Assembly: GCA_963924565.1 (NCBI GenBank)
Contig: OZ004610.1
Location: forward strand, 11,780,001 to 11,844,000
DNA: 64,000 nucleotides
Origin: Ascidiella aspersa
Lineage: Eukaryota
Direction: 5' to 3'
Shown one piece after another: positions 2,177-33,735 of this stretch. The notes under the pieces are model-generated. The model saw nothing but the letters and a program-made list of their open reading frames with translations. It was not told the origin of the DNA and searched no databases. The position numbers and the translations under genes were made by a program. The number at the start of each line of letters is the position of its first letter. Position 1 is the first letter of the stretch.

Positions 2177-5100
2177 TTAGGACCACTCAATAGTGTGTAC
2201 GCTCGAAAGTCCCAGTGTCAAACCACTGATGGTCAATTTCTTTAATGTAGCATCGTAAGTAAAGTTGGAGCCATCGAGAATGTTTCCGTCAGCAGTGACA
2301 CCGCTAACACCCCCATTCTGGCCGTAAACGGTAATAGATTCAAAGTACAAACTCGATATTTCTGGTAGATCTGCAGCGGTGTGGTCGACCGTGATTGTGA
2401 GTTGGCTCTATGTGAAACAAATAAAAAACGATGTACATGTGATCAATCAAAAACGTATGCAACGCCTATTGAGAAATTGCGTTTAAACTTGCATTTAACA
2501 AGCGTTCAATGGACAAAAAACTGTTTTTTTTCAACAAGTGTAAAATTTTAAAAAGGTTAACAAAGTTTCTTTATTGTAACTTTATCTCCGATCTTTAAAC
2601 TAAAGTTTGTATGAAAGACTACGATTTTCGACAATTTTTTTAACATTAAAGTTGCTTTTTCAAATGAGCATCAACGCAACCCACAAACGTATCACTCACT
2701 GGTATACATGCGAAAATCATGTGATGGAAATTGACCGACATGTCCCTTTGTTCACCGTCGTCCCAGAACAAGTTGCCGTTTGCCTCTTGAATAGCATCCA
2801 AAGCTACCAGGAGAGACATCGGATTTTTCCGGCTTGCATTTGTCGTCACATCAGGGTTCTACAGTAGTACGTGAAACAAAGCGATAAAGCGAATTAGCGG
2901 TATACTTTTATTTGTTACCCATCACCTTTTGACAATGAGGTCTATAATTATGTAAATGATCGCAAGATATTAGGCCTGGCGCTTAATTTTGAAGAGAAAA
3001 AGCGTCATTTTGATGAACGTCGCTACCCTTGCTTGGTCGTGCTACTAGTTAAGGTATACTTATAACTAGGGCAATTACTTTTTGACTTGTCAAAAAAAGG
3101 GAAATTTTGTCAAAATATACACGTTAGTTCAAAATTTGGCAAAATTATTTCAATTCAAAATCGACTAAAATGCATATAAACTAGAGTCAGCTTTTTGAAA
3201 TTCTCCTTAGTGAAGTTTTATCAAATTTTAGTTGAATTATACTCAACAGCATTTTAACTGTATTATAATATGCATTAGAGCAAATATACGGTATACGTGA
3301 GCCGGCAAAATTAACCACCCAGGCCTAGTTAATCGCATTAGATTTAGCTCGAACTGTGTTTTTGCTTTATATAAGTGTGTATCTCTGATTTTGACAAATA
3401 TATTAATCAGTATTTGCTGTCGTTTTTCGCTTGTATTTCGCAATTATCTCATTTCCTATTTCGATAATATGTTAGGCCTTTGTAATTTTCTGCAATTATT
3501 TTTACGTTTTATTTCAACTGTTTACATAAACAGTTTTCTAAAATAACCAGGGTCTTGTATATGTTTGGCATTTTAATAGTTGTTTGTCTTTTTAAAAGGA
3601 CAAAAATAAAAAAAATAACTGTATGCTCGACCGGTAAAAATATCAAAATGTGTGGTTGACGACGCCAAGACACTAATGTAGTAATTAAAGCACAACGTTG
3701 TTTAAATCAACATATTTCTAATTGGTCAAAATTTTGTCAAAAAAATATATTTTTAAAGTCCCAAATTTGTCAAAATTTTAATTTTTTTGTTACGTTTGAG
3801 TTAAAAAAATAATCGCCCTATAACACAATAAAACGTCATAACACAATAAAACGTTAGTCGTAAACACAACCACAGATGATTGGATATCAATCATTAAAGA
3901 CCCGGTATACGCGAAGTAAATCTATGTAACAAACTATAACTCATTGGCGATTTGTGTTGATGTAAATATTTCGAATAAATGTTTGTACAACAATTGAAAT
4001 CACATATGCATTGGTAACAAACTTTAGCCAGTAGCCATACACTCCGAAATTTTCTTATTAACACCTATATTATACCCTTCACTTTGTTCTACCTGCATCG
4101 GGATTATGTAGCCTCCTCGGACGTGTAAGGGAATGTAGTCAAGTGGTGCGTCAAGTGAGATGAACTTGCCCGCGTTCATTACTTCTGCGCCCTGCAAAAC
4201 AAACTTATTAACACAAGGCTGTATAACAGAGCTGTGTAAAACTTCAGAAGTGGAAATCCTTTAATAATTGTTTTTATAAAAAATAAAATAATAAACTATT
4301 GAGTTTCGACGTGAATGCAGTTCATCCGGTGTTGTATTTCGAAATTCGTTATCCATTTGATAGAAATATAAAACAGTATTTGCGCAATGCTCACTTACCG
4401 TCCGGAAATCGAACCACCTCGATTGGTCGGGGAAGTACCCGGTCACTTCGGTGGCCCCCTCGTCCATCACGGGGGTGACAAGGAAGGCCGGGCCAAGGAG
4501 GAACTGGCGGTCAGCGTCCCACGTCTTGCGGTCCGACGGGAACCTGAAATACAGAGAGGTTTAAGAGAGCTGAATGTTGCAGCATTGTATTATGGATACG
4601 CACTGTATACATTCGGTGTATAGGCACTGGTCTTGCGAAATGTGATACCTATATCCGGGATTTTTGCAAACAAAGTTTTAAACATTGAAAAATTGATTAC
4701 TACTTGTCATACATTGTAAATCAATGACTAATATAAAGAACACAAATTGATGACATTCCTGTTGTATATAGACCACCATTTAACCAACTGAAATGTCGAA
4801 GAACGTAATTACCACAAGTGAATAGTATCGACTGTCGAGTCAGTGTTTTTTGACTATTATTCGCACACAACGGATAATAAGGATATTATTTAATATCCAT
4901 TATATCAGGGGTTTGCAACCTGGGGGCCACGGGCCTTTTTAAGGGGGCCATATATTATTTTATCATTTTAACTACCGTTACAGTATAAACCAGTTTTTTA
5001 ACTAATTTTTAAGGTTAAAAAAAATACAGGGGCCATTGATTTCTCACATTTTTTTTTCAAAGTGTGAAAACACGGTATGAAAAAGGTTGGTAACCTCTGC

Positions 5101-33735: not shown

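Follow-up and report, generated by a model that had tools for sequence, protein, structure and literature searches.

Unit order in an ascidian three-unit alpha-glucosidase gene is the reverse of that in vertebrate sucrase-isomaltase

The vertebrate digestive enzymes sucrase-isomaltase, or SI, and maltase-glucoamylase, or MGAM, each carry two GH31 units, an N-terminal (Nt) and then a C-terminal (Ct) one, and according to Nichols and colleagues and to Naumoff (2007) both genes reportedly stem from one already doubled ancestral gene, Nt and Ct being the products of the doubling. A locus of the ascidian Ascidiella aspersa raises the question of how old the two types are and in what order they were joined. 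A sequence-only reading of the 64,000-nucleotide (nt) stretch analyzed here (contig OZ004610.1, positions 11,780,001 to 11,844,000; hereafter the window) had described one gene with units in the order Ct-like, Ct-like, Nt-like, the reverse of vertebrates. This order is real and holds in ascidians: Ct-type, Ct-type, Nt-type, against the vertebrate Nt, Ct (Ct...), as the loop pattern, the motifs and the tree placement of unit 3 all confirm. We consider it likely that the window gene is the orthologue of the three-unit membrane alpha-glucosidase annotated as 'sucrase-isomaltase, intestinal(-like)' in Ciona and Clavelina, with the unit types, order and history set out below.

The window contains no runs of N, its G+C content is about 38%, and in its list of open reading frames (ORFs) those with GH31 motifs lie exclusively on the minus strand. 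We modelled the gene by spliced mapping with two guides, the Ciona intestinalis 'sucrase-isomaltase, intestinal' (P0237, 2734 amino acids (aa)) and its '-like' counterpart from Clavelina lepadiformis (P0236, 2731 aa), names that are automatic NCBI gene-model labels; junctions were refined for GT/GC..AG ends and frame and scored against the guide protein. All 56 junctions obtained with the Ciona guide were in frame and bounded by GT/GC..AG, and 47 exon coordinates were the same with both guides (Table 1). The window gene is colinear with both proteins over about 54 exons at about 64% identity. In tblastn searches against the window, the best matches of P0236 and P0237 were 51-54 pieces that followed one another strictly from 33443 down to 2180 (mean identity 64-65%), and the starfish and axolotl three-unit proteins reached an identity of about 52%. 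Because the frame is open over 57 exons, the model is colinear with P0236 and P0237 and the inter-unit introns measure just 159-582 nt, we conclude that this is one transcription unit, encoding a probable N-terminal anchor and then three trefoil+GH31 units.

At its 5' end the model has no in-frame start codon upstream of the first mapped exon, 33332-33437, and therefore at least one 5' exon is probably absent from it, the start codon lying in an exon further upstream. The first mapped exon may encode a type II membrane anchor (signal-anchor-like), a candidate suggested by its hydrophobic stretch. The span first proposed for the gene, 2177-32419, was correct at its lower end, which is the stop codon, and too short at its upper end: the first trefoil exon has its upper boundary at 32419, whereas mapped coding sequence reaches 33437.

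Expression of the locus was assessed with an RNA-Seq run (X8) that bears the matching species label and of which about 6% was sampled, mapping 170 reads. Depth was 1.8-8.6 in the exon-holding bins of units 2 and 3 and 6.48 over the linker exon between them (bin 13846-14042), with 0 in bins 13649-13845 and 14437-14633; all seven bins at depth 0 fell within modelled introns. Loose ends of 4 and 5 reads coincided exactly with exon boundaries of the model, at 10359 and 16180. The first mate mapped to the plus strand throughout, except in repeat bins 11088-11481 and in bin 15028-15224 (0.55 on the opposite strand), so that, given usual stranded libraries, the signal represents minus-strand RNA.

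A unit hidden Markov model (HMM) built from 16 single-unit proteins recognized three complete units in the model, at 1173, 1184 and 1125 bits for units 1, 2 and 3. Pfam, PDB and protein-database searches were run per exon and showed that every unit begins with a Pfam Trefoil domain (E = 9e-5, 6.2e-12 and 8.9e-8, respectively). In a profile search of the genome contigs (cut-off 23.5 bits), PF01055 matched unit 1 at 86.2 bits (27102-27311), unit 2 at 66.1 bits (16782-16961) and unit 3 at 64.1 bits (6808-6975); a lone unit 1 exon scored 23.0 bits against the same family. The (WI)DMNE and HW.GD motifs of GH31 enzymes hold the catalytic Asp residues, and because each of the three units keeps (WI)DMNEP as nucleophile motif and HW(L/T)GDN as acid/base motif, all three are predicted to be active alpha-glucosidases. 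Only five intron positions are common to all three units, three are shared by units 1 and 2 only, four by units 1 and 3 only and two by units 2 and 3 only, and the others are private. So few common positions point to strong intron turnover since the units split, and the positions carried no signal on the relationships among the three units.

The motifs that had been read from the letters as diagnostic of type were found at the units named, each in one frame of the minus strand, with the exception of the pattern FTYD..F.GLP.FV..LH for unit 3, which was off by one residue: the exon reads FTYD, three residues, then F.GLP.FV..LH. In a six-frame scan, type motifs of 8-11 residues had no occurrence on the plus strand and no second occurrence anywhere, and chance is thus no issue. 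What these motifs say about type differs from one to the next. RQLDFT and DPAISxNET, together with the long loop after VWP, do track the Ct type, the first two with a distribution nearly that of the insert described below, although NET after DPA.. also occurs in protostome units. FQLC(R/K)YGY does not track it, since 10 of the 11 protostome units carry this motif or FHLCRYGY and the eleventh has S for C; as judged from these sequences, FQLC(R/K)YGY is ancestral and FQLSRW.Y is derived in the Nt-type clade. We accordingly rejected typing by motif alone; the unit 1 exon with the ancestral FQLCRYGY scores higher against human NtMGAM (111.7 bits) than against human CtMGAM (99.6 bits).

The types also differ in the loop after VWP, whose length we counted from VWP to xPD(F/Y). 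In units 1, 2 and 3 of the window gene it spans 32, 26 and 11 residues, respectively, and the Ciona and Clavelina proteins have the same three units with the same 32/26/11 loops. A loop of 32 residues was found in nine of nine vertebrate Ct rows, in three of three tunicate first units and in P0026, which we take to be cnidarian (Aurelia, a jellyfish) from its 'GoldUCD' tag; 35 residues were found in both amphioxus rows and 26 in all three tunicate second units. The loop was 11-13 residues long in 47 of 47 rows from GAA (12), vertebrate Nt (8), tunicate third units (3), other Nt-type units (10), protostomes (11) and the outgroup (3). The long loop reflects an insert of about 21 residues, whose bearers in our sample were confined to the Ct units of vertebrates, units 1 and 2 of tunicates, the single-unit proteins of amphioxus, a single holothurian protein and P0026; in the model of the holothurian protein Holothuria_b, the start of the insert is present and the exon that should follow is lacking.

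In pig and human CtMGAM, a 21-residue insertion in subdomain b1 is described as CtMGAM-specific; it builds subsites +2/+3 for longer maltooligosaccharides, and its Trp binds substrate at subsites +2 to +3 (PMC12805851). The unit 1 insert aligns residue by residue with those of human (3ton) and pig (9kz6) CtMGAM, Trp included, and the exon that holds it scored 66.0 bits against human CtMGAM 3ton, compared with 32.2 for GAA, 21.4 for NtSI and 20.9 for NtMGAM. The unit 2 insert is six residues shorter and lacks the insert Trp, and unit 3 has no insert. Exons of unit 3 scored in the opposite sense, with NtSI (64.2 bits) above NtMGAM (57.8) and GAA (45.9), and in a second exon 38.8, 30.2 and 24.8 bits in the same order. 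By analogy with the vertebrate enzymes, unit 1 may act on alpha-1,4 chains of greater length and unit 3 on short substrates.

We then asked how common this arrangement of loops is, fetching 538 proteins, among which 188 multi-unit proteins had every loop read. The patterns were short-long in 105, short-long-long in 35, short-long-long-long in 13, all short in 28, long-long in 4, short-long-short in 1 and long-long-short in 2, the last being exactly the two tunicate proteins. Two of the two-unit vertebrate proteins, P0229 (Podarcis, 1834 aa) and P0233 (Discoglossus, 1806 aa), had the long Ct loop in both units; these could represent Ct-Ct genes, or else longer genes whose models are incomplete.

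The ascidian gene resembles vertebrate SI and MGAM in its trefoil+GH31 units, its probable N-terminal anchor and its two unit types, including the Ct insert (PMC12805851), and differs in that the vertebrate proteins have two units, Nt then Ct, whereas here the order is reversed, the Ct type is doubled and unit 3 is not the exclusive sister of vertebrate Nt. The three- and four-unit MGAM or 'SI' proteins of tetrapods and rodents (Ambystoma P0197, Mus P0215, rat P0001) likewise gained their extra units by internal duplication of the Ct type, but in the order Nt-Ct-Ct(-Ct) instead of Ct-Ct-Nt. Echinoderm (Acanthaster P0241, Diadema P0246), mollusc and annelid (Mizuhopecten P0254, Owenia P0243) proteins are also about 2700 aa long with three trefoil+GH31 units, yet these are of one type only (three short loops, 20 of the 188) and cluster by lineage, being separate multiplications instead of a mixture of two types. 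GAA is a single trefoil+GH31 unit with a short loop like that of unit 3; it is sister to the Nt-type clade (99.8/100), and a grouping of unit 3 with GAA is rejected.

A search with exon 30030-30281 (minus strand) against 1.84 billion representative proteins returned 3150 relatives at E <= 0.001, and many of the best 150 of these had two to four matched stretches. Cutting 41 proteins with the unit HMM gave 69 aligned units; these 69 rows were hand-picked, with each clade retained, from a 126-row FastTree overview in which units covering fewer than 550 HMM positions were skipped (four cases). GAA sequences were retrieved by a search with the 580-aa fragment P0097, a search with the amphioxus protein P0025 having returned multi-unit proteins only and no GAA; P0127 and P0117, considered as vertebrate GAA, were ruled out by PDB searches. 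Of 1621 alignment columns, the 848 filled in at least 60% of rows were kept. The columns of the loop insert fell below that threshold and did not enter the trees, and the insert is therefore evidence separate from them.

Trees were computed under LG+C20+F+G4 with posterior mean site frequencies (PMSF), as a quick maximum-likelihood (ML) analysis of the 69 rows with the Shimodaira-Hasegawa-like approximate likelihood ratio test (SH-aLRT) and as a full search on 45 rows with SH-aLRT and 1000 ultrafast bootstraps (supports given as one and two values, respectively). The reduction to 45 rows removed two nematode units, P0150, Ptychodera_b, the Argopecten single-unit protein and 19 others judged redundant, namely vertebrate (including two GAA), invertebrate GAA-like, amphioxus, echinoderm, mollusc, annelid and lobster rows. 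The two trees agree on the main clades. Approximately unbiased (AU) tests used the 45 rows, constrained searches and 10000 RELL (resampling of estimated log-likelihoods) replicates in two runs, hence two p values.

Each unit of the window gene was sister to the matching Ciona and Clavelina unit in both trees (support 100; 68-71% identity per unit). The Ct units of vertebrates grouped in a clade of their own, and so did their Nt units (each at 100, with hagfish among them), and the separation of SI from MGAM sits inside these two vertebrate clades with the tunicate units outside both; the window gene is therefore orthologous to neither SI nor MGAM. Tunicate third units joined ambulacrarian units (96; 99.6/100), these together joined vertebrate Nt (95; 98.3/100), and the resulting Nt-type clade was sister to GAA (99; 99.8/100). 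The GAA clade itself (100/100) had protostome, ambulacrarian and tunicate (Phallusia) members and none of the three window units, and constraining the tunicate third units to join GAA was rejected (log-likelihood difference (dlnL) 85, p 9e-5/2e-4). Unit 3 is thus firmly classed, on its sequence, as Nt-type and apart from GAA. Tunicate units 1 and 2 were sisters of each other (95; 95.9/92) and lay in a weak clade, which we call clade A, with single-unit proteins of amphioxus, Saccoglossus, Holothuria (two) and Ciona savignyi and with P0026 (90; 23.7/70). Vertebrate Ct formed part of a trichotomy in the 69-row tree and, with a protostome root, fell outside clade A, GAA and the Nt-type clade together in the 45-row tree (73.5/89).

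The phylogeny proposed at the outset as a check thus came out in part as expected, with unit 3 in the Nt clade (98.3/100); a Ct clade that includes units 1 and 2 was not recovered by ML, although the AU tests leave it acceptable (p 0.28-0.36). The constrained union of vertebrate Ct with tunicate units 1 and 2 was not rejected (dlnL 7.1, p 0.29/0.36 with 45 rows; dlnL 10.2, p 0.277 with 69 rows), and neither was vertebrate Ct with the whole of clade A (dlnL 6.0, p 0.21/0.24) or a single clade of all insert bearers (dlnL 26.5, p 0.13). Three other constraints were rejected: a common clade of all tunicate units (dlnL 168, p 1e-7/1e-70), an exclusive clade of vertebrate Nt with tunicate third units (dlnL 35.6, p 4e-4/1e-4) and vertebrate Nt with vertebrate Ct (dlnL 68.7, p 7e-5/2e-3). 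Neither of the outcomes named beforehand as contrary, the three units grouping together or unit 3 grouping with GAA, occurred. Because vertebrate Nt and Ct do not form one clade, the two types are older than the split of tunicates from vertebrates, as the sequence-only reading had supposed; they appear to be older than chordates as well.

The tree, the AU tests and the insert are most simply accounted for if units 1 and 2 belong to the insert-bearing type and the Ct units represent this lineage in vertebrates; the long Ct stem (0.37) would then be drawn towards the root in the ML trees. We disfavor the literal ML topology because it needs the Ct lineage to have been lost in all non-vertebrates and clade A to have been lost in vertebrates. 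In the history that we regard as most likely, both types would have been separate single-unit genes before chordates; tunicates and vertebrates would each have joined them on their own, one in the reverse order of the other. Units 1 and 2 go back to an internal tandem duplication on the tunicate side. Independent fusion, with the order reversed, is the best reading because multi-unit GH31 proteins arose repeatedly in animals: those of lophotrochozoans, crustaceans, nematodes and flatworms cluster by lineage, as do the echinoderm three-unit proteins, all of them Nt-type, and the amphioxus Ct-type proteins are single units of 935-958 aa. These data cannot tell such fusion from permutation within an array.

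More tentatively, we propose that chained alpha-glucosidases of the 'brush-border-type', in which a long-chain unit (Ct-type, with the insert) is paired with a short-chain one (Nt-type), were assembled twice, in opposite order in tunicates and vertebrates, from single-unit genes whose split preceded bilaterians, the latter because a probably cnidarian protein bears the Ct insert. If true, this would make the domain architecture convergent, and the vertebrate Nt-Ct arrangement would not be the primitive state of Olfactores. The picture of a single doubling changes in several respects: both unit types long predate the doubled gene, the insert that gives CtMGAM its long-chain specificity exists in single-unit amphioxus and probably cnidarian proteins, multi-unit GH31 proteins arose many times in animals, and in the group most closely related to vertebrates these two types stand in mirror order. 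Taken alone, this is an ordinary digestive-enzyme gene with an architecture already annotated in two ascidians. What it offers is a testable handle on how the digestive enzyme with two specificities was assembled, along with natural Ct- and Nt-type units for comparative enzymology. In the literature searched we found no discussion of unit order in tunicates, nor of unit order or types outside vertebrates.

Several observations weigh against the main reading. Neither ML tree recovered a clade of vertebrate Ct with tunicate units 1 and 2, the support of clade A falls to 23.7/70 in the 45-row tree, and the constrained searches were made in the fast mode of IQ-TREE. Tunicate third units join ambulacrarians and not vertebrate Nt alone, at odds with the species tree. 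Within clade A, the Ciona savignyi single-unit protein and Holothuria_a have a loop of 12 residues and the Saccoglossus model is without the loop region; the insert could also be ancestral and lost several times. As for the transcript, no splice joint of X8 is among the read joints listed, so that a single transcript across units 2 and 3 is inferred, and depth was 2.4-3.8 in bins 10497-10890, which correspond to the modelled intron 10517-10905; this RNA may stem from a retained intron, a missed exon or another transcript.

The alternative that survives best, which we nevertheless judge unlikely, is that tunicates and vertebrates inherited one fused ancestor that was later permuted, with the same two types and no independent fusion. 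Permutation could have come about by doubling of a two-unit gene to Nt-Ct-Nt-Ct followed by loss of the ends, or by differing read-through joins in an alternating tandem array. In its favor, both sister lineages combine these two types; duplications of units inside a gene are common, to judge from the short-long-long (35/188) and short-long-long-long (13/188) proteins and from Ambystoma, whose units 2 and 3 are sisters at 96, and an exclusive clade of Ct with tunicate units 1 and 2 is tolerated by the AU test. The same account predicts an exclusive clade of vertebrate Nt and tunicate unit 3, which is the constraint rejected above at p 1e-4 to 4e-4, and it sits poorly with the single-unit state of the amphioxus Ct-type proteins. 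Nor does any further GH31 unit stand beside the gene: the PF01055 matches on its contig (C4) are the three units only, and the 30 kb upstream hold other genes.

Slightly less probable again is a reading in which units 1 and 2 fall outside the Ct type altogether and represent a separate old lineage together with the amphioxus, holothurian and cnidarian single-unit proteins, their likeness to Ct in the insert, RQLDFT and DPAISxNET being ancestral or convergent. This is what the ML topology of both trees says when taken at its word, and the ancestral FQLCRYGY and the NET of protostome units also speak for it. On the other side, the branch that separates the two groups is weak (73.5/89) and the Ct stem is long, and the double loss already mentioned (Ct in every non-vertebrate, clade A in vertebrates) is required. 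The insert, moreover, matches human and pig CtMGAM residue by residue, including the Trp, and is found in 0 of the 47 GAA, Nt-type, protostome and outgroup rows.

That three adjacent single-unit tandem genes were misread as one is highly improbable: no inter-unit splice joint is among the reads-table joints listed and the model lacks a start codon, against which stand a frame open across both linkers with GT..AG junctions, inter-unit introns too short to hold promoters or anchor exons, a matching architecture of 2731-2734 aa in the NCBI models for two further ascidians, and RNA depth that is even over the linker exon and on both sides of the unit 2/3 border.

Table 1. Coordinates of the three-unit glucosidase gene and its parts in the window.
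Feature	Position	Strand	Remarks
Three-unit glucosidase gene, coding part	2177..33437	-	57 exons, 8028 nt, 2676 codons, no stop inside
Anchor-candidate exon	33332-33437	-	Hydrophobic stretch of ~21 residues ahead of unit 1; aligns to P0237 residues 35-69
Unit 1 (Ct-type)	23670..32419	-	Trefoil exon 32314-32419 and 17 more exons
Unit 1 exons	32314-32419, 31827-32043, 31302-31453, 30844-31012, 30365-30461, 30045-30283, 29702-29820, 29154-29343, 28576-28689	-	
Unit 1 exons, continued	28339-28426, 27971-28118, 27782-27906, 27127-27307, 26589-26708, 25548-25690, 25210-25313, 24526-24690, 23670-23828	-	
Unit 1 type motifs	FQLCRYGY 30105-30128; YMDRQLDFT 29770-29796; DPAISGNET 29301-29327; VWPD 29205-29216	-	Six-frame scan
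Unit 1 catalytic motifs	DMNEP 28412-28426; HWLGDN 27819-27836	-	
Linker exon, units 1/2	23325-23404	-	Flanking introns 265 and 582 nt; coordinates agree between the two guides
Unit 2 (Ct-type, sister of unit 1)	14165..22742	-	Trefoil exon 22585-22742
Unit 2 exons	22585-22742, 21829-21938, 21432-21580, 21074-21242, 20385-20518, 19955-20152, 19460-19598, 18920-19072, 18003-18207	-	
Unit 2 exons, continued	17354-17492, 16788-16956, 16368-16484, 16032-16180, 15794-15934, 15435-15560, 14695-14836, 14165-14329	-	
Unit 2 type motifs	FQLCKYGY 20011-20034; YMERQLDFT 19544-19570; DPAISANET 19046-19072; VWPD 18953-18964	-	Six-frame scan
Unit 2 catalytic motifs	WIDMNE 18079-18096; HWLGDN 16860-16877	-	
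Linker exon, units 2/3	13894-14005	-	Flanking introns 159 and 412 nt; recovered with Ciona guide only
Unit 3 (Nt-type)	2177..13481	-	Trefoil exon 13319-13481
Unit 3 exons	13319-13481, 12658-12760, 11863-12017, 10906-11019, 10359-10516, 10047-10166, 9602-9729, 9249-9355, 8992-9112, 8735-8854	-	
Unit 3 exons, continued	8568-8664, 7550-7683, 6814-6975, 5914-6030, 5286-5434, 4399-4543, 4093-4191, 2700-2858, 2177-2407	-	
Unit 3 type motifs	FQLSRWNY 9671-9694; 11-residue loop [11 protein letters not shown] 8822-8854; WSIP 6850-6861	-	Six-frame scan
Unit 3 catalytic motifs	DMNEP 8650-8664; HWTGDN 6886-6903	-	
Stop codon	2177-2179	-	Spliced model

Elsewhere in the genome, PF01055 matches occur on five other contigs. 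Three loci are GAA-like (C9:4.43 Mb, C8:11.11 Mb and C8:11.13 Mb), with 67-69% identity to a Phallusia GAA-like protein; two of the three stand in tandem and have very few introns in the catalytic part. At C2:38.94 Mb lies a short-loop single-unit gene of the kind of Ciona savignyi P0059 (71% identity). Within the window, an intron of unit 3 holds a high-copy repeat at 11088-11480, where genomic raw-read depth reached 92/77 compared with about 2-4 nearby and many loose ends fell at 11115-11121.

Upstream of the glucosidase gene, an EFG_C exon at 38315-38578 (minus strand, E = 1e-15) and an EFG_IV exon at 40944-41129 (minus strand, E = 1.5e-11) mark a gene for elongation factor G (EF-G), probably the mitochondrial one, about 5 kb away on the same strand. 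Human GFM1 and SI both lie on 3q25-q26, and the adjacency of EF-G and glucosidase genes could be an old linkage. Farther along, near-identical ORF blocks at 51100-54200 and 58400-61400 (for example 52069-52239 and 59349-59519, or 53764-54078 and 61049-61363) form a tandem duplicate.

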